A DNA stretch of 64,000 nucleotides from Thalia democratica (Eukaryota), in contig OZ241828.1 in assembly GCA_965202585.1 (NCBI GenBank), positions 20,088,001 through 20,152,000 on the forward strand. The letters are read 5' to 3'. Made by a program: the position numbers and the translations under genes. Shown in pieces: positions 1,957 through 33,800 of the stretch (positions within the stretch are counted from its first letter, which is position 1; each line of letters opens with the position of its first letter). The notes under the pieces were generated by a model, which searched no databases, was not told the origin of the DNA, and worked only from the letters and a program-made list of their open reading frames with translations.

Positions 1957-1993
1957 CAATTCAATTCAAGCTTTAACAGCTTGAATTGAATTG
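1957..1993. repeat. Perfect 16-bp inverted repeat with 5-nt loop
   Basis: CAATTCAATTCAAGCT-ttaac-AGCTTGAATTGAATTG read directly. Confidence 0.85.
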
Positions 1994-5244: not shown

Positions 5245-5272
5245 AAGTCAAGGTCATAGGAGGTCAAGTTCT
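5245..5272 (+). promoter_or_regulatory. Candidate nuclear-receptor element (AGGTCA-n4-AGGTCA, DR4, overlapping a TCAAGGTCA monomer site)
   Basis: AAGTCA AGGTCA tagg AGGTCA AGTTCT in very AT-rich DNA; motif match only. Confidence 0.3.
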
Positions 5273-6423: not shown

Positions 6424-6749
6424 TAGCGTTGCCAAAAAACCTGAAATCCTGGAAAATAATTAAAATCTGGAATTTTAAATAGATTTTACATGTAAGGTAA
6501 TGAAAATTAGGTAATATACGTAAAATTTAATATATTCAATAATTTTTTTTAGTGGTATTCAGGATTTCATTTAAATGTTACACATTTAATCTAGCTTTAC
6601 ATTATCTTTTTAATTTTGTTATACTATTAAAGACAGTATTTTACCTATATTTTAGTGCTTTACTAAAAATTTAATTTTTTTTTTGTATTTTATAAATCTG
6701 GAAGAAATCCATAAAATCTGTAAAAATTCAAACAATATTTGGCAATCTG
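6424..6749. mobile_element. Decayed MITE with CAGGGTTGCCA-type ends
   Basis: Left TAGCGTTGCCA and right TGGCAATCTG resemble the TIR of the element at 46233-48337; no TSD recognisable. Confidence 0.3.
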
Positions 6750-9361: not shown

Positions 9362-11600
9362 TTAGTTTGTTGTAAGAGAAAAAGTTTGATTTATTTTCTA
9401 GTTGATTAAAACTTAAGATGGTAAGTACTTGGTTTGTATTAGTGATTAAAACATTTGAAAAATTAGTATTGTAACAGATTGGATTTTACTGTTTTAATAA
9501 TTATTTTCTTTTTTCTATTTATTGTTATTCGTTTAATTTATATATCTTAGTTTGCTGGGTTAGTAATAGTTAGTTTATTTAATGACTTTTAGTAATTAAA
9601 TACTACAAATAAATAAACTGTTTAACCTTTGTAATTCTGGGTGTTTTTAATCGTACATCACACACATAAAACAGTTTTATAATAAAATAAAAACTATTGA
9701 ATTAAAAAAAAAAATTTGAAGATGAATCATTTTCCTTATGTTTTTTGTACTAGTATTGATATTTTAACATAAGCTAATTTCATTGAAATAACTCTTTTAA
9801 TAAGTTTAATACTTTAAAAAAATTGGTGAGTATTTACAAAATTAACTGCCAACATATTTGCAAAAGTTAATAGTTTACCTTAAGTTTTAATTTAGTTCAC
9901 TAAATTATACAACAAACACAAATTTTTCTACGTTTAATTTATTGCGTTATTTTCTTAACTAATTTAATATATTTTTTTCATTTTAATTGTTTTGGTTCAT
10001 TGAACCACTGTGAAGGCTTTATTCTTTTTAAGTATTTTCTTTATTTCTTTACCTTATGTATATTTGCATTTTCCTATATATTATTCTGTACTGTTGATTT
10101 TTATTGTAAAGTTAATTTTTACTTATATGAATTGTGATAATTGTTTTTGTATCTTCATTTGTCTGCATTATACCTCTCTCTAGATATTGACTTTCAAGAT
10201 ACTTTCTAGATACTTTCAATAAATTCATGACTTGCTTATGGCTGAAAGTAATGCGAGATGATCAAATATTTCCATATATTTGATGAGATACAACAAGTTT
10301 AGATCCGCCGAAAGTTTCCCGTTAAGCCTTTAAAACTGCCATTCTACGGGTAAGCATTCTACCAATATCATCTCAAGGTTTTCACATTCTGCTGTGTCTT
10401 AAAGACCAAACTTTCTCGGACCTAGTTTAGCTGCTTGTTTTTACTGTAATTTTGAGCTTAAACTTGAGATGATAAGACAATATGTGGTGATAATTATATT
10501 CTTCCCAGATGTTTTCTTTGTTATGCGCATAGTCATATAAGTTATCACACAGTAGTATTACTCAACACTTAAAAAGTGATCAGTTTTCTAAATGCTGAGA
10601 TGATACTAATAGTTGATCATCTGTCTTTACTATCCTATTGTTTAAGTTTGTTTTTGTGAATATTATTGTCTGAAACATTAGCTTATTTCTTTAGATGCCA
10701 ACTATAAATCTTCCTATTCCTTCAAACCTAATTGAATGCTGCTCAATCAACCTTAAAAATTTAATTCAGATACCTTGACTGCTCAGATCAAGATACCATC
10801 ATTGGTGCTCCTTTTTTAAGGCTGAAACATTCATGGATCCTCGAGAATTATCATTAGCTAGTTAGACACATTTGAAAACAAGCTCCATGGTTTGAAGTTT
10901 AACTCATATTTGAATTACCCATACTACTTACTAGCTGTATAGCAATTTGTGAATATATTTCAAGATACATTTCTTCCTATAACTTATGCTTCCTAAATCT
11001 TCCGGGCTCAATACACATTCAGGTATCTTGGTGCTCAATCCTCAATACTGTGTATGCTTAATAAAGATCCTTAGATTTATAAACAAAGTAGTTTACTGAT
11101 AAGGCTGACTGTAGAACATACTTTAAACTTATATCACTTAGTTCATATATAAGTAATTTAGATTGCTTGTTTAAATAGTGTGCGCTAGTTGTTGTTGATG
11201 TATGAAGGGAGCGAATTGTAACTGCGGACAATTCGTGGCTCGACCTTGATAACTTGGGCACTTTGTTATTTGTTACTTATTGCTATATACTGTAACGGTT
11301 CCATCAACTTAACATTATCATTCCTGCCTAAACTAGATTCATTTCGAACAATATGAACAATTTCTATGAATTTTTTAACGTTTAGATATTGTTACTCCTT
11401 TAGATTGATCCTGTTTTTTTCATACTTATTAAAGACATTTTTGCTTCATACTTAAAATCCTGATAACTCCAATAAACTTCACGCAGGCTTTTTTTTAAAA
11501 CCACAAACAGAAAAACAAAAACTTAACGTATAGTGGCTTGTCGAAGAGGAGCCGCAGAACATGTAAAATGTTTGGCATCTCTCTTCTGTTTGTTGCAGTT

Positions 11601-11789
11601 TTAACTGCTGCTTCCCCCGGTAATCTTCCGGTACAAGTACGGCACTCCGTAGTAGGCCACTGTTCCCAATACACCGACCTTCACTACAATCTTCCCGGTC
11701 TTCTTCCAGTCAATCCCCTGCTGGTCATCCGCGCTCGCTAGTTGTCGCACTTTGCAATGCTCTTGCTTCAGTTCGTGGTGTTCACTCAC
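11601..11789 (-). CDS. Probable last exon of giant gene 1, encoding a C-terminal transmembrane tail anchor (VSEHH...IVVKVGVLGTVAYYGVPYLYRKITGGSSS*)
   Basis: GC-rich ORF with no ATG start, immediately preceded on the minus strand by CTAAC-CAG (branch point and acceptor); phase 0 matches the donor AAG|GTTTGA at 12035. Confidence 0.75.
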   Translation of the reverse strand: MSEHHELKQEHCKVRQLASADDQQGIDWKKTGKIVVKVGVLGTVAYYGVPYLYRKITGGSSS

Positions 11790-12035
11790 CTGGTTAGTTT
11801 AATTTTTAAGTTTGATAAAGTAGTAATTAGTTGAAAAATAAAAATCTTTCAAATGTCAGGCTTTACAAGTTTAAACGATTTTACACTGTATGAATATTCT
11901 GTTTCTAACACATTAAAAGTAAATGCAAATACAATAAAATTTTAGATATAATATTACTTAAATTAATCTATAAAAAGTAAAGCTTAAATAATTATTTTCG
12001 CTAAACAGCTATAAAAAACAACATCATCATCAAAC

Positions 12036-15000
12036 CTTGCTGACTTGACTCCTGCCTTCCTCGGGCACTTTTGCTACTTCCTTCTTGACGCTCACTGCTT
12101 CCTTCTTGACGTTCCCTCCCTTTTCCATCTCCTTCTTGACGTGCCCTCCCTTTTCCATCTCCTTCTTCAGGTTCTTCGTCGGTTGCACCCCAAGCATTCC
12201 CACGTTGCTGCCCTGCAAGCTCACCCCGTCCTCGCGGAACACCGTGTAGTTCACCATGTACGTCTGCCGCGACTCCTGCGACTCCCTCACGCTCCTGCTC
12301 GTGCTCTGGTGCGAATCTACCATCCTCTTCTCCTTGGCGTTCTGCCCTGAGTGTCCCACCGCGCTCTCGCTCTTGTCCTCTTCCGCGACGCTCTTGAAGC
12401 TCTTGAGGCTCTTCTTGTCGTCGAGGACCAGCTCCCTGGACGTGATCCTGCTTATGGAGGTGGCCGTGGCGTGCTTCTCCCATTTCACAAACTCCGACTT
12501 GTCCGAGAAGTTGGACGGGCTCCTGACTACTTGCTCCTGCTTCTTGTAATCTTTCTGCTTCCTCTGGTAGCGTTCCTTCTCCAGGTCTTCTTTCCTGACG
12601 TCCACGCTCGAGCCCTTACACAGACTCTCCTCCGCCTGGGATACCTCCTCAATGTACCGGAGCAACTCCTCTTCATCCTTGTTGCTCGGCTCCTCCGCCG
12701 TAAGAGATTTCTCCTGTTTCCTTTTGTTGCTCGGCGCGTACTCTGCCAGCCCTATGGTCCTCAAAAATCCCGACAGCCCGTACTTGGCCACGCTCGACGT
12801 CCTGCAAGAGTTGTCCTCCTGCTTGTACGACACGTTGTCGCCGGTGTGGTGCTCCGACGGCTGGACTGATGCTCTCACGTCGACGTCGCTCTCCTGCGGG
12901 TTGTCCAGGTTCGTCCCGGAGTTGTTACGCGGGAAAGTTGTCTCCACGCGCTGACCGGATCTGTCGGCCCTCAATTGAGCGAATTCTCGATGCTGCTCGG
13001 TGAACCTCGAGTAGCTGGGCTCCGACGGCCTGTAGCTTTCGGCTTGAACCGTGAACCTGGAACAGCTCGGTTCTCTCAGCTGGGAGTAGCTGGGATCTAT
13101 GTTGACGGAGCAGCGCTCGAGGTAGTACTGCTGATCCACGCTGCTGACTTTGTTGACGATTTGCTCCGTTTGACAAGCCTCTTCCACTCTGGTCTTCTCG
13201 TGGACGCTCTCCAAAGACTTCCTCCTCAGGTCTTCCGGGTTGTCCAGAGCCGTCTGCCACGAGTCGACGCTGCCCCTGCTCTGCTGGCTCTGCGTCAGGC
13301 TGAGCTTGTTGCTGTGCTTGCTCCTGCTGTGCTTGCTGCTATCGATCGCGCTGTGCTTGCTCGAGTGGCATCCCATCAGGTCCTTGGTGCTGATCAACAG
13401 CTGGACCGAGTCGGATTCCGCCACGGACCCGGCAGCTTCTTCGACTGGCTTCTCGGCGAGGTCTTGCAAGAACTCGTCCTCTTCTTGGATGTAACACGGC
13501 TGCTGCTGTTCCGGTTCGTTCAGATACACTTCGGAGTGCATGCTCAACTTGTCTGGGATTTCGCTAGGATACTCGAACTTTGGCTTGTTGCCCACCTGAG
13601 ACGAGATGAGGTCTTCCGACTCGTCTTCAACTAGTTCCTGTATGTCGTTGTGCTCCGACAAGTAATCAGGCAAGTCTTCCACGCACTCGGATATCGGCTC
13701 CGGTATGGGCTCCGTGAACTCTTCGTGGTGACTCGGCGGCAGATACTCTTCGCCCTCCGACTCTTCCTTGTGCTGCGGCTCCTCTGCCTCGGCCTCTTCC
13801 TCCTGCTCAGGTTCCGCCAGAACCTCTTCCTGCTCCACAGAGTCTTCTTCCTCTTCCGAGTACGTGGCTGACGCTCCCAGCGCGAACTTGAACCCGTCTG
13901 TCAGATCTTCAAACGCGTTGCTGAGCCGCTTGGGGTACTCGACCAGCGTGGCGATGTCTTCCACCACCGCCCTCGTCATCTCTTTGCTCACGTTGTACAT
14001 GTAGTTGTACGTGCTCTTCTGCAAGGTGTAAGTTCCGTACCTGCTGGTGCTCGCGCCTTGGTACTTGCCGTGTATGTCCTTGGCCGGCGCAGGCTTTTCC
14101 TTCTTTCTTTTGGGGACGGGAGAATTGAGAAGGGGACTTGTGGTCACGCTGTTGAGGTACTCCTCGAACGTTGGCACCTTCTTCTCAGGCTTCGGTTCCT
14201 TGACCTCCTCCTTTTGCACGGTGATCGTTTCCTCTTCCTTGGGGAAGTAGTAGTCGGACTTGTCGTCTGGACTCCTGTACCTGACAAACTGGTAGTCCTG
14301 TATCTCGTGGCCCATCAGGAACTGGTTCATGATGCTCTCCCTGAGGCTCTTGTCCGAGTACTTGTTGTTGCCGGGATGCAAAATGTCGTCTTCAGATTCT
14401 GGATGTTCATCCTCGGCTTGTTCGTTCACTTTAGTTTGAGAGATGCTCTGCTGTGCAATGAATTCGTCCTCAACATCATTTTGTTTGAATTCTTCTTTGA
14501 GGTTTTCTAACTCGTTTTGCACAAAATTGCTGTGTTCCTTATGATCAGTTTCCAACAGTTTATGTAGTTTGTCCTGCTCCTTGCGAGCGTCTTCTAGAGA
14601 CCTCTGCAGGAAATCGTTGTATGGCAAGACCTCTTCTACTACCTGAGGTTCTGGAAGTTCTTCTACTTGCTTAGGTTCTAGAAGTTCTTCCTGAGGTTCT
14701 GGAAGTTCTTGCTCAGGTTCTATAAGTTTTTCCTGAGGTTCTGGAAGTTCTTGCTCAGGTTCTGGGAGTTCTTCCTGAGGTTCTGTAAGTTCTACCTGAG
14801 GTACTGGAAGTACTTCTTCTACTTGCTCAGGTTGTGGAAGTTTTACTTCAGGTTCTGTAAGTTCTTCCTCGGGTTCCGAAGGAAGTTTATCCTGCTCCTT
14901 GCGAGCGTCTTCAAGGGACCTCTGAAGGAAATCGTTGTATGGCAAGACCTCTTCTCCCTTAAGTTCAGGAAGATTTTCTTCTACCTCAGGTAATGCTTCC

Positions 15001-18000
15001 TCAGGTTCCGAAGGCACGTGCTCTGTAATGTCGTCCTGGTCATCACTAAAACCGTCCTGATCTTCCTTGTCACTAATGGCGCTGTAGCAAGGCGCGTTCT
15101 CCTGCCTTGTGTCTACCTCACTCTCTTTCCGAGTAACTTGAACGGCTTCTTTCTCTGGTTTCTTACCAGTTAGGATCTCCTCGTCTACAAGGATCGAGTC
15201 TGCCGCTTTCTTTAATATATTAGCGTCGAAGATGGTCGGAAAGACTCCGTGCTCGTCAGTGAAGCGAGTCTCGACGTTCTCGTTTGATATTTTCTCGATG
15301 AGGCCGCCCGATTCGTTGTAAGCGTGCTTTCTGACGACGTCCTGCACAGAAAAGACGACTTCCCTGGCTGATTGAACCACGTTGTTCTGGTTCTCGTCCT
15401 CTAGAGGCGTGGAACCTAATATGTGCCCGTGGGTAAGAGGTTTCGTGAAGAGACCTATGATCCCTTGAGTTTTATCTTGCGCCCTTTCGCTTATAGCGCT
15501 AAAGTGGTCAAAGTTGTTATCTTTGACTGGGTAGTTCTCGCATTCTTGCAAGTACATCTCGTTGGCGAGGTTGTTCGAGTACTCTATCAGGTTTCTAATC
15601 GATCTGATAAGCCTCTCTTTCTCAGGTTCGTAAAAAGATTCCTTGCCTAGAATTTGTCCCTCTGTTAAGGATTGAAGGCCAATCTTTCCTAGGTTGTTAG
15701 ACTTAATCTGGTAAGGCGTCTGGTCATCTAAGCTGACCGACTTGATCACTGAAACAACTTCTTTCACCACGTTGTAGCTGGCAGTGCCAAGCATCGTTCT
15801 ATTATCGTATCTACTTGATGTAAGGTTGAGGTCTAGCACTTTCTCTAAGACGCTCGCGATCACGTTAGGGTTCTCTTCGGGGAAGAACTGCTTCGCGTCT
15901 TCCAGCTGCAGAGTTTCCACGGCGGTTTCTCCGTCGCCCAGATCGGTCGACTCGTCCGGTGCGGATGTGAGGAGGTTGAACGTGGATTGCACGACCGTTT
16001 TCGCTGATTCGATCAGCTTCTGGTGGTCGTCGTTCGTCACCGGGCTTTCTAATAGCAATTGCTCTGGTGTTAAAGAGTCTATGCCGAAGCGGTGCAAGAC
16101 TGCGGTTGAGAAATGGTTGGGATTGGTAAGACTGTACTTGCTGGCTTCCATGTTGTCGTTTGACTCTGTGACTCTTTGTTGAGTGTTTGTGTAGTCTGAC
16201 TTTAAAGTTTTGTTGGAGACAGATTTAGCAGTGCTCAACAAGTTCCTGACGCTCTTAACTAGATTTTTTTGGTTCCTGTCCTGAATGAAATCGTACCCTG
16301 TTAATTGCTGCATCGTCAACGATCCGAACCCGAATCTCTCGTAGTTGCTGGTGGTTCTGAGCAAGCTTCTCTTGCTGCCGCCCGAGTTGGTGCTTGCCAC
16401 TCTCTCAATGAGACTTGCAACCACTCTAGCACTTTCCTTGACCGTTGAAGCGGAATCAAAGGTGGCTTTGGAGATTGATTTTTCCTGCGCCGTGTCGAGA
16501 ACGTCCCTTAAAAGATCTTTGACCTCTTCTGCGTCCGGTTGGTCTTCAAGACTCTTTTCTAATTTGTGGTCGCTTTGATGGTGCACCACAGATTTTACTA
16601 TTTCATATTTGGATTCTACCACCGCCTTTGCGGATTCAATGAACTTTTTGTGGTCCTCATTATAGACTTTACTCTCTCCAATCAACTGCTTCGGAGTGAG
16701 GGCTTCCATGCCGAATTTGCACAAGACTTGCGGGTCCGGTTGGCGGGAAACCAAGTGCTCGGGGGTGTTGAGAGGTATATCAGATTTGTACGACCTCAGG
16801 TGAGGATAAAGATTGATCCTGGATTTGGCCTTCTCTTGCAAGTAGCTGCCGTTAATGACCAGGTTCCTTACTGATTGGACCAAGTTGCTGTGATTCTTGT
16901 CCGGTATTTCCTTCCTACCCAACAGCTGATCGGTGGTCAAAGAGTTGAAACCGAATCTTTCAAAGTTGGACGTGCTAGATATTTCCTTATGATCACTACT
17001 GGATAAGAGTGCCACTTTTTCAATGGCTGACAAGACCGCGTGCGCTTTATGATCTTCAGGACCAGCATTGCCCGATAAAGACTGCAATGTGTCCTTGACT
17101 ATAGTATCCATGGCCCTATTGCTGTCCAAGACGTTCTTAAGTACCTTGACCACTGCCTCGTGGTCGTCAAAGTCGGCAGAACAATCAGAATTATTACACT
17201 GACCTGAATTTTCCACTGTTTCCAAGGTCTGCACCCTCTGCTTGAGCGTGCCCAGTTCGCCGATACTCCTCTTCAGGTTGTTCTGCAGCACCTCCGCCAT
17301 GTCCACAACGTCCTCTGCCACGTCCTGGCCCAGGTTCGGGTCGTCCTGGTAGCTCGCGCTGTCCCTGTCAAGCTGCTTCATGCGCTCCTTGAAAGAGTCC
17401 TTGAGGTTGACGTTGTCCTCCAGCCTCGCTTGCAGCTCCTCGGCGATGTCAATCATCTCGTTGGCCGCTCCCGCATTCCAGGTCGCTCCCTCCTTCAAAT
17501 CGTCAACCGACTTGACTCTCGACTTGAACGCCGTCAGCATCTTGATGTCGGTCACCTGCGTCTTCCTGGACTGCTCCGTCAAGTCGACCATCTGCCCCGC
17601 AACTTCCCAAACGGCCCGGTTGATCACCTCCTCAAGCGACGCCTTCGGGTCCTTGTGCTGCCGGTAGAAGTCCCTCAGCAGTTTCTTCTGCTCCATCGCG
17701 GTCTTGGCGCTCTCTTCGAGCATCTGCGGGGTCTTGTCGTCGAACGCGGTGATCTCGATCTGCTTCTTGAGCTCCTCCAGCTCCCTGAGCGTGTTGGTGA
17801 TGTCCTTGTGCACCAGGGTCATCATGCCTATGGTGTCGTTGCCCATGTCCGACGCGAACTTCTTCGCCCTGCTCTCCCTGTCTGACGCGTCGATCCTGGT
17901 GAGAGTTTTGTCGATCTTCTCCGCGGCTTGCTCCACGTCGTCCATCAAGAGCTCTTCGAGGTCTATGACGTCACACAGCGTGTTGTGGATCGCCTCCTTG

Positions 18001-21000
18001 GTCTCCTCCTCGATTCCGTCCATGTTGGTCACCTGCACCTTCATTGTCTTCTTCTGCTTGAAGTTGTACTCGACGTGGCGCATCAGCTGCTTGATGGACA
18101 GCACCATGTCGTCGGCCAGCGCGACAAACACCTCGTCTTCCTCTCCTTCCCTGTTGTTCCTGACGAGGTTGATCCTCTCGCTCAGGCACTCGAGCGCCTT
18201 GTGGTCGCACCTCAGGTTCTCGTCCGACTCGTCCACCAGGTCAATGATGTCCGACATGATGCCCATGACGATGCTGACGCTCTCGCCCACGCTCCTCGCC
18301 TTGCTCCGCCTCCTCGTGAGAAAGTCGCCCTTCACGCTCGGCTGGCTCACGTGCGTCTTGAGGCTGCTGGCGTCGTCGCACGCTCTCGAGCGGTGCTGCT
18401 CGTTCTTGATGCTGGAAAGCGCGCTGCTTATCAGCTGCTGCACGTTGATGGCCTGCTGGCTCCTCGCCTTCGTGAAGGGGTTCGTCGACACCTCCGAGAT
18501 CTTTTCGGTCACGTAGTTCGTCCTGGACTGGCAAGGAAGCACCAGCTCCACTGCCGAGGTCTCCTCCTTCTTGATGGCCTCGATCTGCTTCTTAAACTCC
18601 GTGATCGCGTCCACGTTGGACTTGAGCTGGACGTGCATGCTGGCGATGGATTCGAGGATGTCGTTCACCAGCTGATCGGCGAACTTGTACACCTCCGACT
18701 TGCGGTCCATCTTCTCCATGGCGTTCTGCACGGCCTGCAGGTTGTTCTCCGAGCACACCAGGTCGTCCCTGAGCAGCTGCTGCACGTCCACCACGTCGCA
18801 CGCGATGCAGTACACCTGGCTCCGGTGCTCGTCTCCCACTCTCGCTCCCAGCGACTTGATCTGCGCGATGAACTCCGCGTTGACGTTGACGTTGTACTCG
18901 ACGTTCATCTGGACGAACTTGCACACGTCCACGATCTCCACCGAGACGTCCACCGCCTTGTCGCTGTCGCACTCCTTGATGATCATCATGCCGCGCTCGC
19001 GCATCCCCTCCAGGTCCTGCACGTCCTGCGCCAGCTTGTTGCACGTCTCCTCCACCATGTCCACTATGTCTCTGGCGATGCCGTTGATCACCGAGTCCGT
19101 CTCCGAGAGGACCTCCTCTTCTTCTTCCTTCGGCTCTTCCTTGGCCTCTTCGTCGGCCAGGTGCCTGACTTCGGTCTGCGAGAGGGACAGGCTCTTCTCG
19201 GCTTCAACGACCACTTCTTCCTCGCTCTGGTCCTCCAGCAAGAGTCCCCTGAGCATCTCCCTGAACTCTGCCAGCTCCTCGATGTGCTCGTCTATTTGCA
19301 CCGGCACGTCCACCATCATTCTCATGAACCTGTCCAGCAGCAGGTGCTGGAGGTCGTTGTCCTTGATCTGGTCGGTCAGCCTCGACTGCTGGTTGCACCT
19401 CAGCTTCAGCTCGGTGAACTCCTTGCTCCTGTTGCTCAGGTCGGCCTTCAGCGCCTCGTCCGTGTCGATGAGGTCGTTGCACGACTGCATCAGGAAGCAC
19501 CGGTCCTCGTCCTTGATCACGTTCGGCACTCTCCTGGTCTCCTCCAATATCTCCCGCTTCCTGGTGATCTCCTTGTCCAGGTCTTCGAGGTACCGGTCCG
19601 CGATTTCCATCATGTCCAAACTCGACTGCACCCAGAACGGGTCCTGCGACTTTTGCAGCGGCTTGGCGAAGTTGCGCTGGATCATGCTGGCCTTGTACAC
19701 GTTGCGCGAACCGTTTATCTCGCACAGGATGATGTCCCTGATGTCGTTCTTGTAACCCGTCGACCACGTCTTGTGCGACTCCGCCTTTTCTTCCTCCTTC
19801 TCCGGTTCGGCCACTTCTTCGATGTTTAAGTCGCATTTGACCTTTTTCTTGCCGCCCTTGTGGGATTTTCCAGACTTTTTGCTGGCTACAGACTTTGTGT
19901 CTGGGATGACTTTAGTCTTTGGTGTGTCTTCTGCTGGCTTCTGCTCGGATTCACTTGGAGATTTTCCGACAGACGACTGCTTAGACTTGTTCTCCTTGAC
20001 CTTCTTGTTCAGCATGGCCAGGGCTTCCTTGATTTTCTCCCCGGTCATCTCCAGACTGTCATACTTGACTGATTTCCTGTCTGTCTTCTCCGAGACGTTG
20101 TCCTTGACAGACTTTGCCACGCTCGTGTTGCTGTCTACCGGCAGCGGCTCCACAGAGCTCACGACGCTGACCTGGTCCACGTTTGTATCTGTGATTTCGC
20201 TCGTGCTCTCGTAGCTGTCGACTCCCAGGTCTTTGATCTTTTTCTTGAGATCTCTAACTTGCTGGTCGCTGCTCTTGCAGTAGTTCAGCATGACCTGGTT
20301 GTTCAGCCGCATGTCCCTGATGATCGTCTTCATGTAGAACTGCTCCTTGCCGTTGGTGTCTGTTTGCATGAGCTGCTCCTCCCTGAAGTACCTCACCTGC
20401 TTCACTGCGCTCCTCATGTCCTTGTGGAGCGTCTTCTCGAGGTCCAAGGCGTCCTTGGCGAGGGCTATGACAATGCTCCTGTTCTCCGCGTTCAGGACCG
20501 GCACCGACTTCAGCTCGCTCCTGATCTTGTCTTTCTCGTTCGCGTCCTTCAAGAAGATCTTCTGCATGTCGGCGCAGAAGCCGTGGACCTCGTTCGCGTA
20601 GTCCGACAACGGCAGGTCGTCGTTGACCGACTCTATCGCCTTGATCTGGTCCTTGAAGCTGTCCAGGGTGATCTGCTGCCTCTCCAGCGCGTGCCTCGAC
20701 GCTTCGATGATCATCACGGCGTCTTCCGTGATCTCCATCACCTGGCTCTTGCTCTCTTCCACCTTGTTCTCTTCGAACTCCTCGTCCGAAACCTCCTTCT
20801 CAAAGTTCACCGGTACCATGTCGATGTTCTTGCTCGCGCTCAGCGACTTTATCTGGCCCTTGAGCAGCTCGATCTCCTTGTAGTCGTGCTTGAAGTTGTT
20901 CTGCAGGACGCTGGCCAGGCTCACCATGTCGTTGGCGATGTCCGAGATGGAGCTCTTCCTCTCCTCCTTGTAGAAGTGCTGCGACCTCTTCTGCTCCTCC

Positions 21001-24000
21001 CGCAGCTCCTTCAGCGTCTTCATGTCGTTGACGTTGATCGAGGACACCTTGCTGATCGACTTCCTGTTGACGGTGGCCACCGGCAGAGTGTAGTTTATCT
21101 TGTTGATGGTCGAGTGGGCCCTGATGGTGGCCGGTCTGCTCGCTTCTTTGAGGCTTTGGATCTTGCCCGAGACGCCCACGTAAGAAACGATGCTGGCGCT
21201 TTTCATGCTGGAGTCCAGCAGGTGCATCTGAGATTGCTTGTTGTTGGCCACTTTTGATTCTTTGAGGTTCACGTCAATGTTCCCAAGAAGTGAAGATATT
21301 TTGCTGATGCTGATATTCGCATTGCCTTGGACCTGCAAGAAGTCTTTTTCCGGCACTATGGGACTTGTGTCGTTGTTTTTAGCGCCTTTTATTGACTCAT
21401 TACTGCTAACTGATGTATCGTCTACAGACTTTACAAGATTAATATTTTTAGCTCCTTTAGATGACCCATTACTGCTAATTGATTTATCGTCTATAGACTT
21501 TAGGTGATCATTGTTTTTAGCTCCTTTAGATGACCCATTACTGCTAATTGATTTATCGTCTATAGACTTTAGGTGATCATTGTTTTTAGCTCCTTTAGAG
21601 GACGCTTTACTACTAACTGATGTATCGTCAATAGACTTAACAAGATTATTGTTTTTAGCTACTTTAGATGACCCATTGCTACTAATTGATTTATCGTCTA
21701 TAGACTTTAGGCGATCATTGTTTTTAGCTCCTTTAGAGGACGCTTTACTGCTAACTGATGTATCGTCAACAGACTTTACAAGATTATTGTTTTTAGCTCC
21801 TTTAGATGACCCATTACTGCTAATTGATTTATCGTCTATAGACTTTAGGTGATCATTGTTTTTAGCTCCTTTAGAGGACGCTTTACTGCTAACTGATGTA
21901 TCGTCAACAGACTTCACAAGATTATTGTTTTTAGATCCTTTAGATGACCCATTGCTGCTAATAGATTTATCGTCTATAGACTTAAGGTGAGCATTGTTTG
22001 TAGCTCCTTTGATTGACGAAACACTACTATCTGATTTATCGTCTAATGTCTGTATGTGAACATCGTCTTGCTCTCTTGGAAGTACGTCAATGTTTTTGAT
22101 ACCTAATGATGTTATACTCATGTCAATCTTAATGCCTTTTAAATAAGCATTGCTAACGCTTTGTTCCTGTAGGTCATTTTGTAGCTCTGTGGGGCTAGTA
22201 ATAGCTTTGCCCAAAGAAGAGATCTTGCTAATGCTGCGTTTGTTTACCCTGTCTACGCTGGAACTCTTATTATCATTATTTGGATCTGCAAATGGGGATA
22301 CTTTGTCCACTGTATCACTGTCTGAGCTGAAATCTGCTTGTGTTTCCTCATTAGCAACCATTATATGTCTTATTTCGTCGTTTTTCCTACCATATGAGAG
22401 GTTTTCGCTTGTAATTTCTCTGTTTGCGTTGTCTTGTACTTCTAGTTGGTTGTCTTTATGTATGTCATGGTTTTGGTTGCCTAAAGAAGATATCTTACTA
22501 ATACTAGGCTTGTTTGTGCCGTTTTGTAAGTCTACAGGACTACTTTGCGGTTGTATATGTTTATGACTTGTGCCAATGTTTTGGTTGCCTACAGACACTT
22601 CTTTGCTAATGCTCTCTACTATAGTAAAGTCCTGTATGTTCTGTTGCTCTTGTACGAGCTTTGTGGGTCCTGTTTCGAGCTTCATTTTATTTAAAGAAGA
22701 TAAGTCGCTCAAGGTTAATTGTATGCCGCTCTGCGCTTCCAAACCGTCATTTTGCAGCTCTTTCAAGCTCAAATCGTAGCCTATCTTGTCGGCCGAGGTT
22801 ATCTTGCTCAGATGGTCGCTGTCCTGCACCGGCAGTTGGTCCTTAAGCATTTCTCTGAGCACGTTGTCGTTGGTAGAGTCGTTTTCTACAAAGTCTGAGA
22901 AGTGCAGGTCACCCTCCGAGGTCATTTCCGACATTTTCGAGCTCTTGTTGTCTTTGACCTTGGCCTGCTGCTTTTTGCTCTCGTTTATCATGGCTTTGAG
23001 CGCTTCATTGTCGGAAGGCTTGTTGCCGAGAAGTCCGTTCAAGCTCATAGGAGATTCCACCTTGTTCAGGTTTTCAAAATCTTCCAGGTGTTCCTGGTGG
23101 TCCTCGATGACAAACTCCGAGAACAGATCCTCGTTCTTGGTTCGCTCGTAGTCTTCGAAGCTCCTGGTGTGCTTGAAGTCATCGCTATCTATTTTAATGT
23201 CCTTTAAGAGCTTGTCGTCGTTGACTATTTTACTCAAGCTAGACTTGTCATGATCAATTTTCCTAGATTCGTCTACGAAGCTTTTCGACTGTATGTAGTC
23301 GTTGAAGCTGGACACTTCGTAGCTCCACTGGTGGTTTATGACGCCGTCCTCGTCGAACTGCGAGTCTCGCCTTATTACTTGAGGTTTTTCCTCCTTGACG
23401 CGCTGTATCTCGCTCAAGGTTATGCTGGGAGACGGGTCAGAGGTCTGGCTCGCCCGGAAGACTCCGTGCTGCTCGAAGGCCTCGACTATGCTGTCCTCCG
23501 CCTTGAAGGGACCTTCGTCTTGGTCGTAGTGCAGTTTTGATTTCTCTTCCTGGGAAGATAGTTTGTTTTCCGTGTCCTTTTTGCTCTGTGGTCTTAGCTT
23601 GACCAGTTTTTTGGCCTTCTTTTTGCTGGGCCTTTTGTATTCATTTTCCTGCCTTTCCAAGTTCTTGCCGCCGTGCAAGAACTTGAGGGTGTCAAGATTG
23701 TCCTTAAAGTTTATGAGTTCCTGGTCATTGATAGTCTTGATGGTCTCAACCAAATGAATATCGTCAGACTCTTTTTGCAGGAGGTACTTGAGGCCGCCGA
23801 CGTTGGCTCTGAACTTGTCCAGTTCCTCATTGTTCAACTCACTGAGAGTTTCAAGCATTTTTACGGGGTCCTTGATGTGCGAGAAGTCTTTGTGCTTTAT
23901 CTTGCTTGACAGCAAGTTCATGCCTTTGAGGCTCTCAAGGTCCGACATGTCGATATTGGGCAGCTTTGGTTTTGATATTGGGTCTTGTTCTGTGCCGTTC

Positions 24001-27000
24001 TGCACTTTGCTTACGGACGGTTCCATGTTTTGGTTATCGCTGTCCTGCCTCTGCACGTTGTAGACCTGCACGATGCTGTGATTTGAAATGTTTTCAATGT
24101 CTTGGAAGTCTTTTTTGGCCAATCCGACACCTTCTGTGTCTATGGAATGTACCAGGCTCTGGTTAGAATTTTTGACTGTTAGGTCGCCCATCTCAGTTCT
24201 TGGTGCGCTTATGGCCTCTCTTAAGTTTGTGCTCTCATTAAGACTGTTATCAGAGACCTTAATGGTTACATGGTCCTTTTTAGACGTGTTTACTTCTGTT
24301 GTGTCCCTGTGTACTATGAAGTCCAAGAGGCTTTTGTTCAGCTTGTCGTTGGACATTATCAAATCAGACTCTCTGATGTCGATATCGTCATTCAAGACTA
24401 TGATGTCGTTTGAGCTCTGGTCGGCTAAACTTTGCAAGCTGGTTTCGTTGTCGCCGTTGGATTCAGATTTGTTTTCACTCAAGTTAGACATTTCTGACTC
24501 TTTATTAGACATTGTCTCACTTTCAGGCTGTTGAATAGATGTTATCTTAGTTTCACACTCTTTTGTGGGTACCAAGTCAATTTCAGACTCATTGTTAGAG
24601 ACTGTTTCAGTTTTAGGTTCTGTTTTAAAGACTGTCTCATATTCAGGTTCTATTATAGGTGTCATCTCAGTTTTAGGCTCTGTTATTAGTGTCATCTTAA
24701 TTTCAGACTCTTTGTTACTGATGTTGTCATTGTCTGAGACGTCTTTAACTGTGTTGTCGCTTTCTGCCAAGCTTTGCTGGCTCTTTTGAGAACAAGCTAC
24801 GCTGTTGTTCTCATTCCATTGATTCACACTGTCAATGGCCTTTGAAAACTCCGTAGACAAGTTTGAACAGTAAGATTTGGCCTCTAAAAGCTCTTTGATA
24901 GCTTCGTTAAAGAAGGAAAACTGGCTTTCTTTTTCTGCTGTCTCGGATGCCTCTTCCAATTGGCCGATTACTGAACGCGATTTTCTCAGTATTTCATGCT
25001 CAATAAAATTGTTTGATCCAAAAAATTTTGGAAGCACTTCGTTTTCAAAAACCGTGCAAACGATCTCGCGTAAGTGTAAGGCGGCATCGAAAGCTGAACT
25101 CTGGCTTATGACGGAACCCTTTTCGGATACTGTATCGTTTTCTGGCGCTTTGTATAATGCCATATATGATTTAGACTCTTTATTAGATACTGTCTCAGTA
25201 TCAGACTGTATGTCAGCTAAGCTCAGCTTGCTGTTTTGAAATTTGGTTCCTTTCTTGATATGTTCCATGGCCTTTTCAAACTTAAAAGACATGTTTGAGT
25301 AGTAAGATTTAGCCGCAGACAACTCTTTGTTGGCTACTTCGACAAAATAGGACTGACTTTCCTTGTTTACTGACTCGTTGAAGGTGTTTAAAAGATCGGT
25401 CAATGAAGTAGACTCTTCAGACATGCCAGATTTGAATATCCCTGGAAAGGTTTTGATCAAAGATGTGCATACTATCTTTTGCAATTGTGTCATGGCAGAT
25501 AGCTTGCTGGCAGAATCTCTTAATTTGTCCTCTCTGGTCTCTGAATCGGACTTTGCGATGCTCAGAGCGTCAATTGCATCGCTTAACTGGTCGATGGCTT
25601 TGCAGTTGTCGTCTGAAGAGCTGCTAATTACGCTTAGTTGAGACTTGAGCATTTTAGCTGCCGTTGCCGAGTCTCTGGCAACTTGAGAGATGCTCTGGGG
25701 GTTGTATACAGGGGTGGTGTTCCTAAAGACGTTATCTGAAGGTTGTGCAATGTTTGCAAAGACGTTATCTGGGGTTTTATAACTGTTTCCACCTATATCC
25801 TTAGAAGTAGTGGCCTCATTGCCACAGTTCTCGTCGGAAGAGCTGCTTATGACGCTCGTCTTCGATTTCAGGGCCATCATCTTGGCCACTATCGCCTCGT
25901 CCCTCGCCATCTGGCTCGAGCACGCGGTCAAGATCGAGCTCACTTCGTCCAGGCCCCGATTCAGCTGCTCCGGCACGTCCATGAGTCCCTGCAGCAGATC
26001 TATTTTGCCTTGCACCGCGTTGAAGTTGCTCAGGATGTGGTCAAGGTCGTGATCGCCCTGATCCACGTTCATGCTCGCCACTGCCGCCTCTACGATGTGC
26101 GAGGGCTTCCTAAGCAGCTCCTCGAAGCTGTCCAGACCCTTGAGGTCGGCCACGTTCGCGGACCTGGGCACGTGCGTCGCCGGATTTATCTTAATTATGG
26201 GCAGGACGGTCTTGGAATTCGGACTGTCTGTGTAGGCCGAGGTTAGAGCCGAATTTGCCGCCGTGACGTAGTTGTCAATGGAAGACGGGTACTCCTGGAC
26301 GTTCAGTTGGTCTATGAAGGTCTCTATTGACGACATCTCGCTCACAGAACAGCTTTCTGTACCGCTGTCTGGTTTTTCGGTGTCCAGACTGGGTATTTGG
26401 CTTAGTTTAGTAGCGTATTTGAGTACTTTAGCCACGGCCGGGTCGAATTTTAGCTTAACATTATCAGAAGCAACAGATGAAACATTGCTTTTAGCCTCTA
26501 TTGGCTTGACAATGTTCTCACGTTCATCTGGTAAAGACATATCTGATAATTCGGCGGGTAGACATGTGTCTAGGCTAGGTAGACACTTACAAGATGGTTC
26601 CTTGCTTATGAATTTATGATGACTGTAAGATTTGTCATATACAAAGTCATAATGCTCTTTAGAGAATGTTTTATAACTATTATTCTCTGCACTGACTCCT
26701 GTTTGTACCAACACATCATGCATTGAAGCTATTGAGCCATCATTGTGCATTAGGATGTCGTTTGCTGACCCTGGTATGAAAGATACCTTGTCAATCAGCT
26801 GGAAAAAGTTGCTTTTGCCATCATTGTTAACATAGGAACGCTCATTTGGCCTTTTTTGATTAGATTTAGACATAACTTTCTTAGTTGAAGACTGTCCTAT
26901 GTTGAAAGACTCATTTTCTACTACAGATGGTAAGTTATCCTTACCTTTTTGGCCTAATGTATCATCCTTAGCCCTATTATAGTTAGTCTTACTCCTAGTA

Positions 27001-27269
27001 TAACGTTTGCCTTTACGCTTAGAAGATAGCAACTCGTTATTTTTACTTAAGTTAGTGTTTTGTGAGTTATTAGACAACTCATTTGTATATTTATCAGATG
27101 ATACGGGCGTAGAAACTGTGCATAAAGGCAGTTCCTTGTTTTCAGACGAACTAATAGTAGTGTTAGACTTATTTAAAGAGTTATCCTCAGTACTTAAGTC
27201 AGAATCTGATGACCCTGACTGGTAGAGAATCTCATGTACTTTAAATGTATTAAAATTACTCTCAGACAT
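12036..27269 (-). CDS. Giant gene 1, main exon (5,078 codons; about 5,140 aa with the last exon): acidic, largely low-complexity protein with helical-bundle repeats and several tandem repeats; no recognised family
   Basis: 15.2-kb uninterrupted ORF in an AT-rich genome; first ATG at 27269 (the track start at 27284 is TTG); internal protein-level repeats with synonymous divergence; 3' end coincides with a GT donor. Confidence 0.88.
14566..15030 (-). repeat. Coding Glu/Pro-rich 7-aa (21-bp) repeats bracketed by two copies of EVLPYNDFLQRSLEDARKEQDKL
   Basis: PEPQEEL/PEPEQEL units; the 23-aa block occurs at about 14884-14952 and 14566-14634. Confidence 0.85.
21369..22010 (-). repeat. Coding 69-bp (23-aa) tandem repeat, about 9.3 copies, with A/B alternation
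   Basis: A=KGAKNNDHLKSIDDKSISSNGSS, B=KGAKNNNLVKSVDDTSVSSKASS; order ABABABAAB. Confidence 0.95.
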
Positions 27270-27822: not shown

Positions 27823-30800
27823 ATGTCATCGGAAGATATAAGCGAGTTTAAAGTACACGAAATCACATACACTTGTAGTGGATTGAGCATAGAACAAGAT
27901 AAAAACGACAAAAATAAGTCAAATAAAACCGAAACTAAAAACTTAGGTGAACAATCATCACAATTAAATCCAAACAAAATAAATAGTGATTCTTCCTTGT
28001 CTACAGTCTTAACATTTCAATCAGTTTTAGAAAGTTTAAGTTTTACGGATGAAAAGAATAAAACTTTATCTAGCCCATGTATCAATAACTCATTTACATC
28101 TTTTATGAATGCTTTGGAAAACTCAAATGCAAAATACACCAAGTACAATCAATCTTCTAAATGGACATCTAACCTAAAAAACAGAGACTTAACGAACTTA
28201 TCTAGCAACTGTGCTTATTCTTTAAACAAAAACTCTACAAACCAAGCTACTAAGGCACATAAACCTCTTAATAAAAACCAACCAATAACTGCTAATTTAG
28301 AAGAAACTAAAGAAGCAAAGAACGTATCCTGTTCAGATCAAGCCCCTACAAAAATCAACAAAAACCTTACTCAAATTAAGCAATGTGAACAAGTAGTTAT
28401 CTACAAGGAAATCGAAAATGCAGTACTTCAATCAGTGAATGATGTGCTTCAATCAGATCAATATGAAGCAAACATGGTAGCAGCAATCAAAGAAGTGATG
28501 GACTGTAAGAAGCTGTCCAAGTCAAAAAGACAGAAGATATCCTCAATAATGTTAGTTTTAAACCAGTTTTCTAAAAGAATAAGCGCAAGTAACATTATCA
28601 GTCTAAAAGATCAGTCTTTTGATCCAAGCTTTTTTATCTACAATCAACTTTTAGGCATAGAGCCAGTAAATAACTTAGTTTTTAGCCATGCTATAAAAGT
28701 AGCTAACAAAGTTATAAAAGATTATACTTGCTTTTCTGATTCAAAAAGCAGTTTTAGTAGTGTTTTTTCTGAGATATCTAACAATAAAATAGATCAAAGC
28801 ATATCTAACAGTAACAGTATTTTAAATGAAAACAAAAATAAAAGAAATAGTGCAGTAAGTGATAAAAAAGATATTAGCATAGTTAGTTTTAAACAAGAAA
28901 TTATTAGTTTAAGTTCATCATCTACTCTTGAAAACAAATTTAGCTCTACTGATAAAAAATTAAGTTTAAACAAAGAATATAAGCAAATTGACACTCAAAA
29001 AATACAAAACACACTTGAGAGCATTTCTGAAAGTCTTAAAGAAACTAAAAACAGTTTTAACAAAACTCAATCGTTAAGTAAAATAGACAAAAGTGTTATT
29101 TCTTCTGACAAAAATACTGAAGTAAAACAATCAGTTTCTATTGAAAATCAAAGCAATCGTAAAGAAATGCTAGAATGCTTTAAAGACATTGACGATACTT
29201 ACGATAACTTGGTGCAAAGTCTCACTAAACAGTTGGAAAATTTAGATGATAATATAACTAACAGTTCAACTAAAAACTCTGATATAATTTATGATGTTTA
29301 CACAAAAAGTGTTAAGTATAATAACCTGAGTCCAATTCCAAATACACAAACTGAAATAGTTAAACAAGAACATATAGAAAACAAACTAAATAACTTAATA
29401 GTAGCTTCTGATATATCTCTAAATTATAAGTCTACAGATAATGATCTTAAACCATTTAAGAATCCTCTAAATCAATTTAAAAATACTAAAAAAGAGGAAA
29501 ACATAGAAAAGCAAAAACCTAGTACCATAGAAGTTACTGATATTTCTCAAAGCTGTACTTCTAATGAAAGTGCTTACGAAAGGTTTTACTTTCATTCAGA
29601 CTACAGATGTTTTAGGGACAATTGTAATAAAAAATCTTCATCTTTAAACGGAGAACCATTTCAAAATCGAAATAACAACGAAAATTTTAAGGTTAACCAA
29701 ATATGTCCAGCTGAATGTCATGGTATAAAACTAAGTAGCTGTAATATTAATGACCAAATCAAATCAGTAAATTCAAGTATTGATTTAAGTAGTAAGGTTT
29801 CAGATATTAATCCTGACATAAACAATCAAAAATATTTAGTTGAAGACCAAAACTTAATCGTAAGAACAGATCTAATTAAAACCGAACTTTTTAGTAGTCC
29901 AAGTAATAAATCAATCGTAAATAAAAACAGTAATAAAGAGACACCAAAACATTTTGAGAGTGTAGACAAATCATTTAATAGTCTAGTTCAAACTTTAACT
30001 GAGCAGCTAGAAGACATTGAAGTCAATGTGCCTAGCAGATTAAGTTTAGATACTTTTGATTACGACGGTTCAGAAATGTCAAATCATGACCAAAGTACTA
30101 GTATAGATTCTAAAATCGTAAGTAAATCTTTAAATATAAGTAAGAGTATAACTATTGACAACTTTGAGCCTATAGCAAGCCATGAAAAAATAAAACTTAA
30201 AAAAGAAAGCAGTTCTGAAAAAAATAAGACATCAAAACGTTTTACAAATAATAAGTCTTTTAATAACTTGGTTCAAACTTTAACTGAACAGTTACAAGAC
30301 ATTGATGTAAATGTGCCTAGCAGGTTGAGTTTAGATACTTTTCAAAGTTTAGAAGTAGAAAGTAAACCTTCAGAAAAGTATAGTTGTTCTAATGGTAAAG
30401 CTGAAAGTGTTACAAACAAAATATTAAACACTGACAAAAATGTATCAAAATTAAAGATTTCTGAAAATAATTTGACAAATTGTTCCAAATTTTCATCTAA
30501 TTATGTTAGTACAAAATCTTTTTTAACAAAAAGTATAATAGAATCTGTCAAAAACATAGATTTTAACTTAAATGATATGAAAAACTCAATTTTAAACTGT
30601 GTTTTACAAGTAGGTAGTAAGTATGGAAAAAACCTCTCTAAAGTAAACGTAATTGAACACTTAAGCTCGATTAAAGACTTTAAATTAGATAGTTTCAAAG
30701 AAAATGAAACAACAAAAGTTTATGACTTTCAGATAAATAGTATCGAAGAAGTGTGCAAGTTTTTAGAGAATGTTTTTGATAAAGAAGCAAGTTCTTTAGA

Positions 30801-33800
30801 TTTAAAAAGCAATGTTGAATTTGCATCATCAACAAAAAGTTCAGAAATAGAAAACAAAACTAACTCGTTTTCAAACACAAATCTAGAAAACAACATGAAA
30901 CCAAAAACACATAATAATGACTTATATGCATTTGAAAACCCTTCGAAAAATACTGAAGAAATTAGAAATGTTTTAAATAATTTTTGTAAAATTCCAAGCA
31001 ATGATTTGTACACTTTTGAAAGCCCTTCGAGAAATACTGTAGAAATAAAAAATAATTCAAATAATTGCAATAAGATACCAAATAATGATTTGTACACTTT
31101 TGAAAGTCCTTCAAGAAATACTATAGAAATCAAAAATTATTTTGAAAAAGACACAAGTAATGAAATTGTTAATTCTAATTCTCATTGTACATTTAAAACG
31201 ATTTACAAAAGCTTAGATAACAATTCTGTAAGCAATAATTCAGTGAAAAACCCAGTTGTTAAAGAAACTGAAGTGATATCTTGTAAAGGCGATTCTTATT
31301 GCATGAAAGAAGAAACTTTGTACGAAACAATAAGTAACAGCGCTACAACAAAATCGTATAAAACTGACAACTTCAATGGCTCTATTGAAAAAGCTGACAC
31401 AAAATCAGCAGACAACACGCTTTTTGAAGCGATTTCACAAGAAACAGACAAAAAAGTGAGTTCTAAAAACAATGACAAGTTTAGTCGAAAGTCATTTAGC
31501 AACAAAGGTTCTTGCTATCTAACAGATACAACACAATCTATGAAAACTTGTCGAGCAAGCCCTTATACCAGTGACAAACTAGAATATATAACATTAAATG
31601 ACCAAGACTCTTGCCAATTTACAGAATCTATGAAAACTTGTCAAGAAGGTAGTTTGGAAAAAGTCAATTTTAAAACAAATCAAGTAATTAGGGATGCATC
31701 TTTGTCTTCTTATAAAACAGGTCTGCAGACATTAAATTCAGAAAAACTTTCCAATTTAAAAGACAACAAGTTTGATGCAAACTACAACTCGATTATTAAT
31801 ACAATTACTGAAAACAGTTTAAAGTCTAAAGTTTCAGAGTTTGAAAGTAACTTGACTAACTGCACAGCTCAAAAAAGCTTAAAATCGGGAACTACAGAAC
31901 ATGAAAGTTGTAATTTAGAGATTTATCTAGAAGAGTCTAAAGCAGACAACAGTTATTTAGAAAGTTTTATCAGTGATGATGGTTTCAAGGCGAAGACAGA
32001 CGCTTTAGAAAGCATGCTTAATGGACACGAGATTGAAAACAGTTCACTTTTGAACTGCGTCTTACAGGCAGGAGATAAGTATGTGGGAATCAAAACTAAT
32101 CTAAATAACGAAAACTTGGATACAATTACGGAAAACAGTTCTATACTAAACACAAAACAAGATAATGACTGCAAGTTGAAAACAGTTGAAATAAATCATA
32201 AAATACCCAAAACTAACATGTTTACTTTTGAAAGCCTTTCAAAAAGTACAGTAGAAACTGATTTAAAAAAAGAAAATAAGACGCTAATCAATGACTTGTA
32301 CACTTTTGAGAGTCCTTCCAGAATTACTGTAGAAGTTTTAAAAGCTTTAACACCAAACAGCTCTGTTTTAAACACAAGTTCAAGTAATGGTGATCGTTGC
32401 AGTGTAAGTAAAAAACAAGGTGAAAAGTCTGAGAAAATACCTAAATGCGATTTATACACTTTCGAGAGTCCTTCAAGAAATACTGTAGAAATTAAAAACA
32501 ATGCAGAAGGTAATAAAAACATTGTAGAAGGGCAAACTAAGAGTTATGATGCTGAAAAAAACGCATTTATGAACGAGCTAGACTCACTGTTGCAGTGTGT
32601 TCAAAAAGCAGCAGACAGTTCTAGTTCAAAAGATAATTTAAACAAGGAAAATTTGATTACATACAGTGAAAAACTAGTAACACAGAAAATCTTTAAACAA
32701 GACGAGATTTTAGCAGAGCAAAGTAAAAGCATTCAATACAACTCTTCTAACAAAAGCGCAAATGTTGTTGAAAGTATAAGTCATTTAGCAGAAGATTCTA
32801 AACAAAAGAAAAATTTTAAGACCATTGGAACTTCAGAAATCTGTAAAGATGGTTTAACTGATAACAAAAATGAGACTGAGACAGTTTACAAGTATTGCCA
32901 AGAAAACAAAAGTTATTATACTGACTTTAGTTTTGCAATGAAAGACAGTGTAGACAAATACTCAAAAATCACAAAGTCTGCACAAAATACAGTTGATAAA
33001 ACTGAAAACTCAATGTCTACCGAACCAACACAAAATGATAAACTTAATATTGTAGAAACGCCAGTTGTAGAAAATTTATCAGAAAAATGCAATTCAAATG
33101 AAATAGAGCATAAACAAAGCAATCACTATCAAAGTTGTTATGAAAGTAAAAGCAGCTGCGAAGAAATAGAAAACACAATAGAATTAAATCAAATTTATGT
33201 GGCGGGATCTATAAGCAGTTACTTCGAAACATGCTGTGAAGAATTGTCTAAAAAGTTGCAAAAACTCGAACTAGGAACAAATAAAAACACAGAAAATTTT
33301 GAAAATGCTCACGACAACATGAACTATTCAAAAGTTTCAAAATCTTTAGATACTAACAATTTAGACTTGGTTAATAAAGATCTAGTAAACAATGCCCATA
33401 AATCAGAAAACATAGTCAGTGCAAACTTGGTGTTTCCCAACTCAGACGCAAAGGATTTCACGGTAGAAACCTCGCAAGACACAAACAAAATAGAACTGTT
33501 TCCAAGCTCGAACAGCAGTGAAGAAACCTTGCACAACATAACGAGTCTGAGAGAAACAGACTCTTATTTCAAATCCACGGAGAGCAGCGAAATGAACAGT
33601 GTTCTGGAACAGATCAAAATGAGTTTGAAGAAAGACATAAACGAAATTGACGTCTTCAACGAAAACTTGCACTCGCTAAAAGTTTCCGGGGTTGTGAAAA
33701 ATAACGGTTTCGCAGGGCTATTTAATAACTTTTTTGACAAAAACAAAAAAGTTGAAATTGAAAATGATAATGCAAACAATATTGATAGTACTGTAAATCA

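Follow-up and report, generated by a model that had tools for sequence, protein, structure and literature searches.

A stretch of 64,000 nucleotides from the genome of Thalia democratica (contig OZ241828.1, positions 20,088,001 to 20,152,000; hereafter the window, with coordinates counted from its first letter) carries on its minus strand a giant open reading frame (ORF) at 12030-27284. It comprises 5,084 codons when counted from a TTG. This gene, referred to here as gene 1, is followed downstream on the same strand by a short GC-rich island with an open frame of its own, and a second large ORF, gene 2, starts about 550 bp from gene 1 and is transcribed divergently. A preliminary description of the window had proposed that a hidden intron of 246 bp joins the giant ORF to the 62 codons of the island in the same phase and thereby turns its product into a tail-anchored membrane protein. 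The coordinates and the frame given there were confirmed, and the codon usage of the island, together with the pattern of frames and indels in a sister species, supported the join. Our analyses suggest that gene 1 very probably contains this hidden terminal intron, with the giant ORF (exon 1) joined to the island (exon 2). From the first Met to the donor there are 5,078 codons, and the joined product would have 5,140 aa. The features of the locus are collected in Table 1.

Table 1. Features of gene 1 and gene 2 in the window, with the observations that define them (a slash marks a predicted exon edge).
Feature	Coordinates	Strand	Basis or remark
Probable 3' untranslated region (3'UTR) of gene 1, ~1.5 kb	10080..11600	-	Part 11190-11600 compared with the sister species
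Gene 1 exon 2, 62 codons + TAA, phase 0, no ATG	11601..11789	-	Frame, codon usage, ratio of nonsynonymous to synonymous substitution rates (dN/dS)
Hydrophobic segment IVVKVGVLGTVAYYGVPYLY	11631..11690	-	KKTGK before, RK after; 9 residues from the end
Predicted terminal intron, 246 nt, 15-24% GC	11790..12035	-	GC drop, indels relative to the sister species
Predicted acceptor AAACTAACCAG/	11790..11800	-	AAACTCACCAG in the sister species
Candidate branch point CTAAT	11826..11830	-	37 nt from the acceptor, conserved block
Predicted donor AAG/GTTTGA	12030..12038	-	Read-through stop TGA (12032-12030) included
Gene 1 exon 1, coding part	12036..27269	-	Open frame; Met at 27269
Gene 1 N-terminal motif MSESNFNTFKVHEILY	27222..27269	-	Common to gene 2
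Gene 2, 2,648 aa, single ORF, starts MSSEDISEFKVHEITY	27823..35769	+	No Pfam family
Predicted gene 2 C-terminal anchor LVYQLSIVATFIFMAQVGCPALV	35677..35745	+	Then KRFSHGK and stop

At its 3' end the giant ORF reads AGC AAG/GTT TGA, so that the exon would end at 12036 and be followed by GT at 12035-12034. The gap beyond it starts with this GT and closes with the AG at 11790, both of types used in this genome, where local acceptors are mostly (A/C)CAG, as is the one at 11790. Both flanks are coding and of compatible phase, and the interior is non-coding. GC content along this end of gene 1 is 54-60% before the donor, 15-24% in the gap, and 52% in the island. Because both edges fall between codons (phase 0 on either side of the intron), the frames of exon 1 and the island join. 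Furthermore, donors could be read at sharp GC drops in the CTSB and P5CS genes of the window (n = 11), and four of the 11 are GTTTGT (exon ends 60268, 59749, 55451, and 43436), in line with the use of GTTTGN donors that had been noted for these two genes. When the cathepsin B exon ending at 43437 was joined to the exon starting at 42649, the peptide aligned without gaps to residues 108-166 of human cathepsin B (E 4e-28) and ran through the junction YKSG/VYQH. This ungapped alignment at 43436 to 42649 indicates that GTTTG donors are really used in the genome. The donor consensus of CTSB and P5CS (minus strand, 42649-61840) is itself unusual, with T rather than the usual purine at +3 in 7 of the 11 sites (GTTTGT, GTTAGT, GTTGGT, and GTTAAT).

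The 62-codon frame of exon 2 opens with GTG at 11789-11787, its last codon ends at 11604, and TAA follows at 11603-11601. Lacking an ATG and preceded by an in-frame TAA three codons before the acceptor AG, exon 2 cannot stand as an independent gene. No other GC island occurs within the 11.6 kb downstream of gene 1, where the same strand contains no ORF of at least 70 aa, and an Rfam scan of window positions 1-13000 returned no match. To score the island we took codon usage in the GC-rich half of gene 1 as the reference and compared the claimed frame with the best of the other five frames. The claimed frame was ahead by 24 nats, within the range obtained for true-frame chunks of gene 1 (7 to 45 nats, 5-95%) and far from that of wrong-frame chunks (-86 to -26 nats). 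GC by codon position was likewise similar, at 0.58/0.37/0.66 in the island vs 0.54/0.32/0.75 in gene 1.

A search with the tail peptide recovered one database protein (P0002, 49 aa, 85% identical), which was located on two ocean metagenome contigs, L008 (5,979 bp) and L009 (4,252 bp, from a Tara sample). These contigs are 97.5% identical to each other and each is about 84% identical to the window over its whole length; their source is referred to as the sister species. Both have the same layout, namely a large ORF running off the contig start, AAG/GTTTGT, an AT-rich gap of 325 nt (79 nt longer than the gap in the window), AAACTCACCAG, 64 codons, and a stop. In a three-way alignment of the window, L008, and L009, identity was 83% at the end of exon 1 (indels of 3 and 51 nt), 71.5% in the gap (indels of 4, 49, 31, 2, 1, 1, and 1 nt), and 82% in exon 2 (one indel of 6 nt). 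Past the exon 2 stop it was 93% over the first 200 nt (indels of 2, 1, 2, and 1 nt) and 89% over the next 200 nt (indels of 3, 9, 12, and 2 nt). All exon indels (3, 51, and 6 nt) are thus multiples of three, and none of the intron indels is. Reading through the gap is impossible in both species, with the stop shifted by one codon (V and stop here, VC and stop in the sister species), and both species lack an ATG in exon 2 and have a stop three codons before the acceptor.

Substitution rates in exon 2 were obtained as Nei-Gojobori counts against the sister species. Over the whole exon, the synonymous rate (dS) was 0.52 and the nonsynonymous rate (dN) 0.13, giving a dN/dS of 0.25. The last 38 codons, from the W to the end, were more constrained (dS 0.62, dN 0.08, dN/dS 0.13, Fisher p 2.4e-5). 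For exon 1, 1,655 codons (its last third) could be aligned and gave dS 0.475, dN 0.078, and dN/dS 0.16; this third is under purifying selection. The 480 codons immediately 5' of the donor are relaxed (dN/dS about 0.36). By these rates, the tail is a constrained island behind a looser linker. Taken together, the data demonstrate, at the level of sequence, that exon 2 is protein-coding, selected in the claimed frame, and unable to start on its own.

Within the intron, CTAAT at 11826-11830 is a candidate branch point, and TCAACTAAT occurs there in all three aligned sequences. The preliminary description had noted CTAAC next to the acceptor. This CTAAC (11797-11793) was rejected and is unlikely to be the branch point, with its A only 4 nt from the AG and CTCAC at its place in the sister species.

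The stretch past exon 2 is conserved far above synonymous sites, with indels that do not keep to multiples of three, and would therefore be a conserved non-coding 3'UTR. Its identity of 93% and 89% contrasts with a dS of about 0.5 and with the 71.5% identity of the intron. Judged by this conservation, the 3'UTR has a strongly constrained element at 11190-11600, perhaps reaching down to about 10080 (minus strand). Within it, a GC-richer block (11190-11262) is nearly invariant between the two species. Furthermore, no sense-strand AATAAA was found from 12035 to 10106, i.e., for 1.9 kb past the ORF stop with the intron included, where about 3.6 would be expected from local composition (P ~0.03). 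The first such sites lie at 10105, 10045, and 10023, at a step in GC content from 30-36%, which persists to about 10200, to about 21%. The pattern of AATAAA and GC fits a transcript that runs through the gap and exon 2 to ~10080.

The conservation of this 3'UTR raises the question of whether the island could be non-coding as well, with no splicing at all and the protein ending at 12030. The adjoining 3'UTR is even more conserved than the island (93%), and non-coding conservation therefore does exist here. Nevertheless, one frame of the island shows a bias to synonymous substitutions (p 2.4e-5 and 2.8e-4, with dN/dS at 0.13-0.25), the sole indel of the island is of 6 nt whereas those of the UTR include 1 and 2 nt, and its codon usage and GC at third codon positions (GC3, 0.66) match those of gene 1. 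We regard this explanation as the least probable of those considered. Alternatively, the island could be an exon of another transcript, either a cistron reached by spliced-leader trans-splicing at 11790 or part of a different gene. Tunicates trans-splice and have operons, and the start codons of genes 1 and 2 are each closely preceded by an acceptor-like site. Such sites, with a pyrimidine run and an AG, occur 1 and 8 nt before the ATGs of genes 1 and 2 (27270-27300 on the minus strand and 27790-27822 on the plus strand) and could be acceptors of 5'UTR introns or of a spliced leader. For the island, however, the start codon would have to come from the leader, since there is no in-frame ATG in either species and a stop lies three codons upstream, and we know of no tunicate spliced leader that supplies a start codon. 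Moreover, the 11.6 kb downstream contain no other exon or ORF, upstream on this strand there is gene 1 alone, and the phase of the island matches the gene 1 donor. An origin from another transcript is therefore very improbable, and we infer cis-splicing from the donor at 12036 to exon 2.

Several points weigh against the intron and its removal. A search of sequencing runs over 11300-14300 matched no RNA run; the three runs that did match were DNA-like, consisting of genomic contigs with uniform depth that covered exon and intron alike. The joined form was not found when a protein database was queried with the last 200 residues of exon 1, and the junction pattern was found neither in JGI metagenomes nor, in a search for a processed copy, in the animal's own genome. 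At an overall identity of 84%, the mere retention of short splice motifs in the aligned contigs would weigh little, and the comparison covers one other species only. That comparison draws its weight from the reading frame and from how indels and substitutions are distributed. JGI metagenomes likewise gave no match to a degenerate pattern for AYYGVPYLYRK.

If the join is made, the C-terminus of gene 1 reads DWKKTGK-IVVKVGVLGTVAYYGVPYLY-RK-ITGGSSS. The segment between the basic flanks is the kind of sequence that the preliminary description had taken for a tail anchor. Its length of about 20 residues, the basic residues on both sides, and the short tail after it were borne out; its hydrophobicity proved only marginal. 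The segment matches the sister species at 17 of 20 positions, with I>T, L>I, and T>A as the only changes, and the flanks KKTGK and RK are invariant. The gene 1 N-terminus is polar, and neither a signal peptide nor a second span was found. The outer-mitochondrial-membrane targeting signal of Bcl-xL has basic residues on both sides of the span (PMC2172731), an arrangement also seen in gene 1, where KKTGK precedes the segment and RK follows it. The GET pathway to the endoplasmic reticulum (ER) selects against weak spans and basic tails (PMC5214336). A KASH domain, dismissed earlier, finds no place here: only 9 residues follow the segment, the protein ends in GGSSS (that of the sister species in GGSSR) and not in PPPX, and Pfam gave no match (E up to 1).

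On the other side of the balance, the Kyte-Doolittle value of the segment is 1.46 over 19 residues, where a cut-off of about 1.6 is usual, and a rough sum on the Hessa scale comes to about +6 kcal/mol. The segment includes four Gly and three Tyr, besides a Lys and a Pro. Among the remaining 19-residue windows of gene 1 (5,079 residues), the highest-scoring one reaches 1.51 and has three acidic residues, so one internal acidic-amphipathic window scores as high as the segment. AlphaFold2 modelled the tail as a hairpin with a predicted local distance difference test (pLDDT) score of 44.9 and no confident helix. All of these speak against insertion into a membrane. On the whole, we lean towards the C-terminal stretch of gene 1 being a membrane anchor, and the mitochondrial outer membrane or peroxisomes is our guess at its target.

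The divergently transcribed gene 2 bears on both the join and the anchor. The first 16 residues of the two proteins follow MSxxxxxxFKVHEIxY, with 10 matching positions and a match score of 48, which was reached in 0 of 5,000 shuffles; the best score elsewhere in gene 2 was 31. A degenerate DNA pattern for FKVHEIxY had only two real copies in the 802-Mb genome, those of genes 1 and 2. Its other matches (L002, L003, and L006) lie in closed frames and were set aside as chance, a control having given 2. At the other end, gene 2 has a segment with a Kyte-Doolittle value of 1.98-2.04 close to its C-terminus, its only such segment, with no other window above 1.0. When the two tails are aligned with G-x-P-x-L-x-basic-basic in register, the local score is 29 (p 0.008 from shuffles), a value that no other window of gene 2 reaches. 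The likeness of the tails, as the preliminary description had noticed, is thus modest and above chance, and gene 2 supports the join more strongly than was noted there, the first 16 residues being shared as well. Long BLAST matches between the bodies of the two proteins are low-complexity only. On the sequence that they share beyond composition, genes 1 and 2 are classed as paralogues, and the ends of gene 1 match those of gene 2 only if the exon join is made. GC3 in gene 2 is 0.16-0.43 throughout and about 0.8 in the last 80 codons, which encode the predicted anchor.

The marginal hydrophobicity leaves room for a different use of the same C-terminus. The join may be real and the conserved peptide a docking or folding motif, e.g., a partner-binding hairpin, with a product that is soluble or peripheral. 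Such a motif would account for a segment that is rich in Lys, Pro, Gly, and Tyr and in which nearly all residues of WKKTGK...YYGVPYLYRK are fixed, the polar ones too, and it would agree with the two strands in the low-confidence AlphaFold2 model. We nevertheless consider it rather unlikely. The stretch ends 9 residues before the C-terminus, lies between basic residues, and has undergone conservative hydrophobic replacements, as a weak anchor would; in the paralogue, an unmistakable anchor occupies the equivalent position and likewise ends in G-x-P-x-L-x-basic-basic.

We therefore return to an intron-containing gene 1 with a weak tail anchor, which, as a whole, is the explanation we find fairly probable. 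The GT-AG intron at 12035-11790 would be removed from the gene 1 transcript, and the 5,078 codons would continue in phase 0 into 62 more (11789-11604), followed by ~1.5 kb of conserved 3'UTR. The product of ~5,140 aa would end in DWKKTGK, a weakly hydrophobic stretch of 20 residues, RK, and 7 residues. This stretch would act as a tail anchor inserted after translation, with the huge N-terminal part left in the cytosol, and its low hydrophobicity and basic flanks would point to the mitochondrial outer membrane or to peroxisomes rather than to the ER. Gene 2 would be a paralogue of like build, with a clearer anchor inside a single ORF. Both the membrane insertion and the organelle are what we infer from these features.

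The body of gene 1 offers few clues to function. Most of the product is low-complexity or helical, it contains no known domain, and AlphaFold2 gave an all-helical model for residues 2690-3390 with a pLDDT of 42.6, too poor for a fold search. Pfam assigned no family to gene 1, gene 2, or the tail, the only match being a sub-threshold one to Bag6. A word-based search with residues 4300-5079 found no homologue, a PDB sequence search gave noise only, and searches of the ESM Atlas gave no usable match. An exhaustive HMMER search with residues 2850-4049 against 1.84 billion proteins retrieved one fragment of 67 aa, encoded on a 533-bp ocean contig (L010:99-254) of a third, more distant taxon. According to these searches, gene 1 is an orphan with no homologues beyond close relatives in the searched databases. 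The 67-aa fragment carries the motif FG-x-x-SLT-x-x-QL-x-G, of which gene 1 has 5-6 copies at residues 3439-3880 (window ~15600-16950), followed by N/DH-x-x-L/I-V/I-x-S-V/A-R/K. The motif matches no known family. The region of this motif (residues 3580-4080) is the most constrained part of gene 1, with a dN/dS of 0.04-0.09.

Repeats and a mosaic of base composition were also observed in gene 1. A 10-codon tandem unit of variable length, KKEMEKGGxV, lies near the end of exon 1 (window 12100-12170), where one individual's contig is without 30 bp at 12114 and the sister species is without 51 bp, both in frame. An AT-rich tandem repeat at window ~21370-22050 (residues 1740-1965) encodes DDKSISSNGSSKGAKNN / LVKSVDDTSVSSKASSKGAKNN units, and residues 4100-4210 form a Pro/Glu-rich repeat (PEPQEELPEP) in which dN/dS rises up to 0.39. 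GC3 varies inside the ORF from 0.25 (residues 1800-1900) to 0.95 (residues 2200-2300) and is above 0.9 in the centre (residues ~2000-3300), a part predicted with low confidence to be all-helical. High GC3 seems to mark the constrained parts of genes 1 and 2.

Annotated without its last exon, gene 1 would pass for a soluble orphan of 5,079 residues; with it, the gene gains the sole feature that hints at a site of action and becomes recognisable as the same kind of protein as its neighbour gene 2. In this genome, a sharp contrast in GC between exons and introns, combined with a sister species at a dS of about 0.5, can settle a gene model without RNA. The result is a correction of a gene model, and the protein is a family-less one of a known kind, with no new class of mechanism. 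If true, a giant membrane-tethered pair in one animal lineage would be a modest, testable lead on organelle positioning or tethering. It is a speculative extension, and one we think unlikely to hold, that genes 1 and 2 founded a family of giant proteins (5,140 and 2,648 residues) that is restricted to one lineage and whose members, anchored to an organelle, act as long tethers or spacers, and that in gene 1 the last intron and the strongly conserved 3'UTR control whether and where the anchored form is made. Such a family, equally doubtful, would be defined solely by MSxxxxxxFKVHEIxY and a C-terminal anchor ending in G-x-P-x-L-x-basic-basic. That its members link an organelle surface to a binding partner of the N-terminal motif is a conjecture of the same low likelihood.

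Among known systems, giant rod-like proteins held by a C-terminal span include giantin (GOLGB1) and the KASH nesprins. Gene 1 resembles them in its thousands of residues, mostly helical or disordered (the helical prediction being of low confidence), which would face the cytosol, and in a single predicted span at the very end. It differs from nesprins in having 9 vs about 30 residues after the span, besides the missing PPPX and Pfam match; calponin-homology or spectrin domains were not detected, and there is no golgin homology. Tail-anchored proteins of the outer mitochondrial membrane resemble gene 1 in layout, with one C-terminal stretch of ~20 residues, no signal peptide, no other span, at least two basic residues on each side (KKTGK and RK in gene 1), and a short tail, here of 9 residues. 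There is no sequence relation to them, however; the predicted gene 1 span is weaker than usual and contains Lys and Pro, and the predicted cytosolic part of 5,100 residues is far above that of known members.

A third group of systems concerns the intron itself. A tail anchor on a separate, alternatively used last exon is known from SLMAP (TA1/TA2, PMC2712456), and tail-anchored isoforms of DMPK (PMC2778554) and a soluble isoform of syntaxin 3 (bioRxiv 10.1101/162958) have been described. By analogy with SLMAP and syntaxin 3, the gene 1 intron might sometimes be kept, with retention giving a soluble form ending in ...SKV and splicing giving the anchored form; this would refine, rather than replace, the removal of the intron set out above. 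The stop within two or three codons past the donor in both species would suit such a switch, and the read-through residues, which are not conserved (V vs VC), argue against it; we consider it unlikely. Alternative use is known for those genes, and the gene 2 paralogue has no such intron. Gene 1 would share with SLMAP, DMPK, and syntaxin 3 the separate encoding of the anchor and the rest of the protein, so that splicing determines whether the product is anchored.

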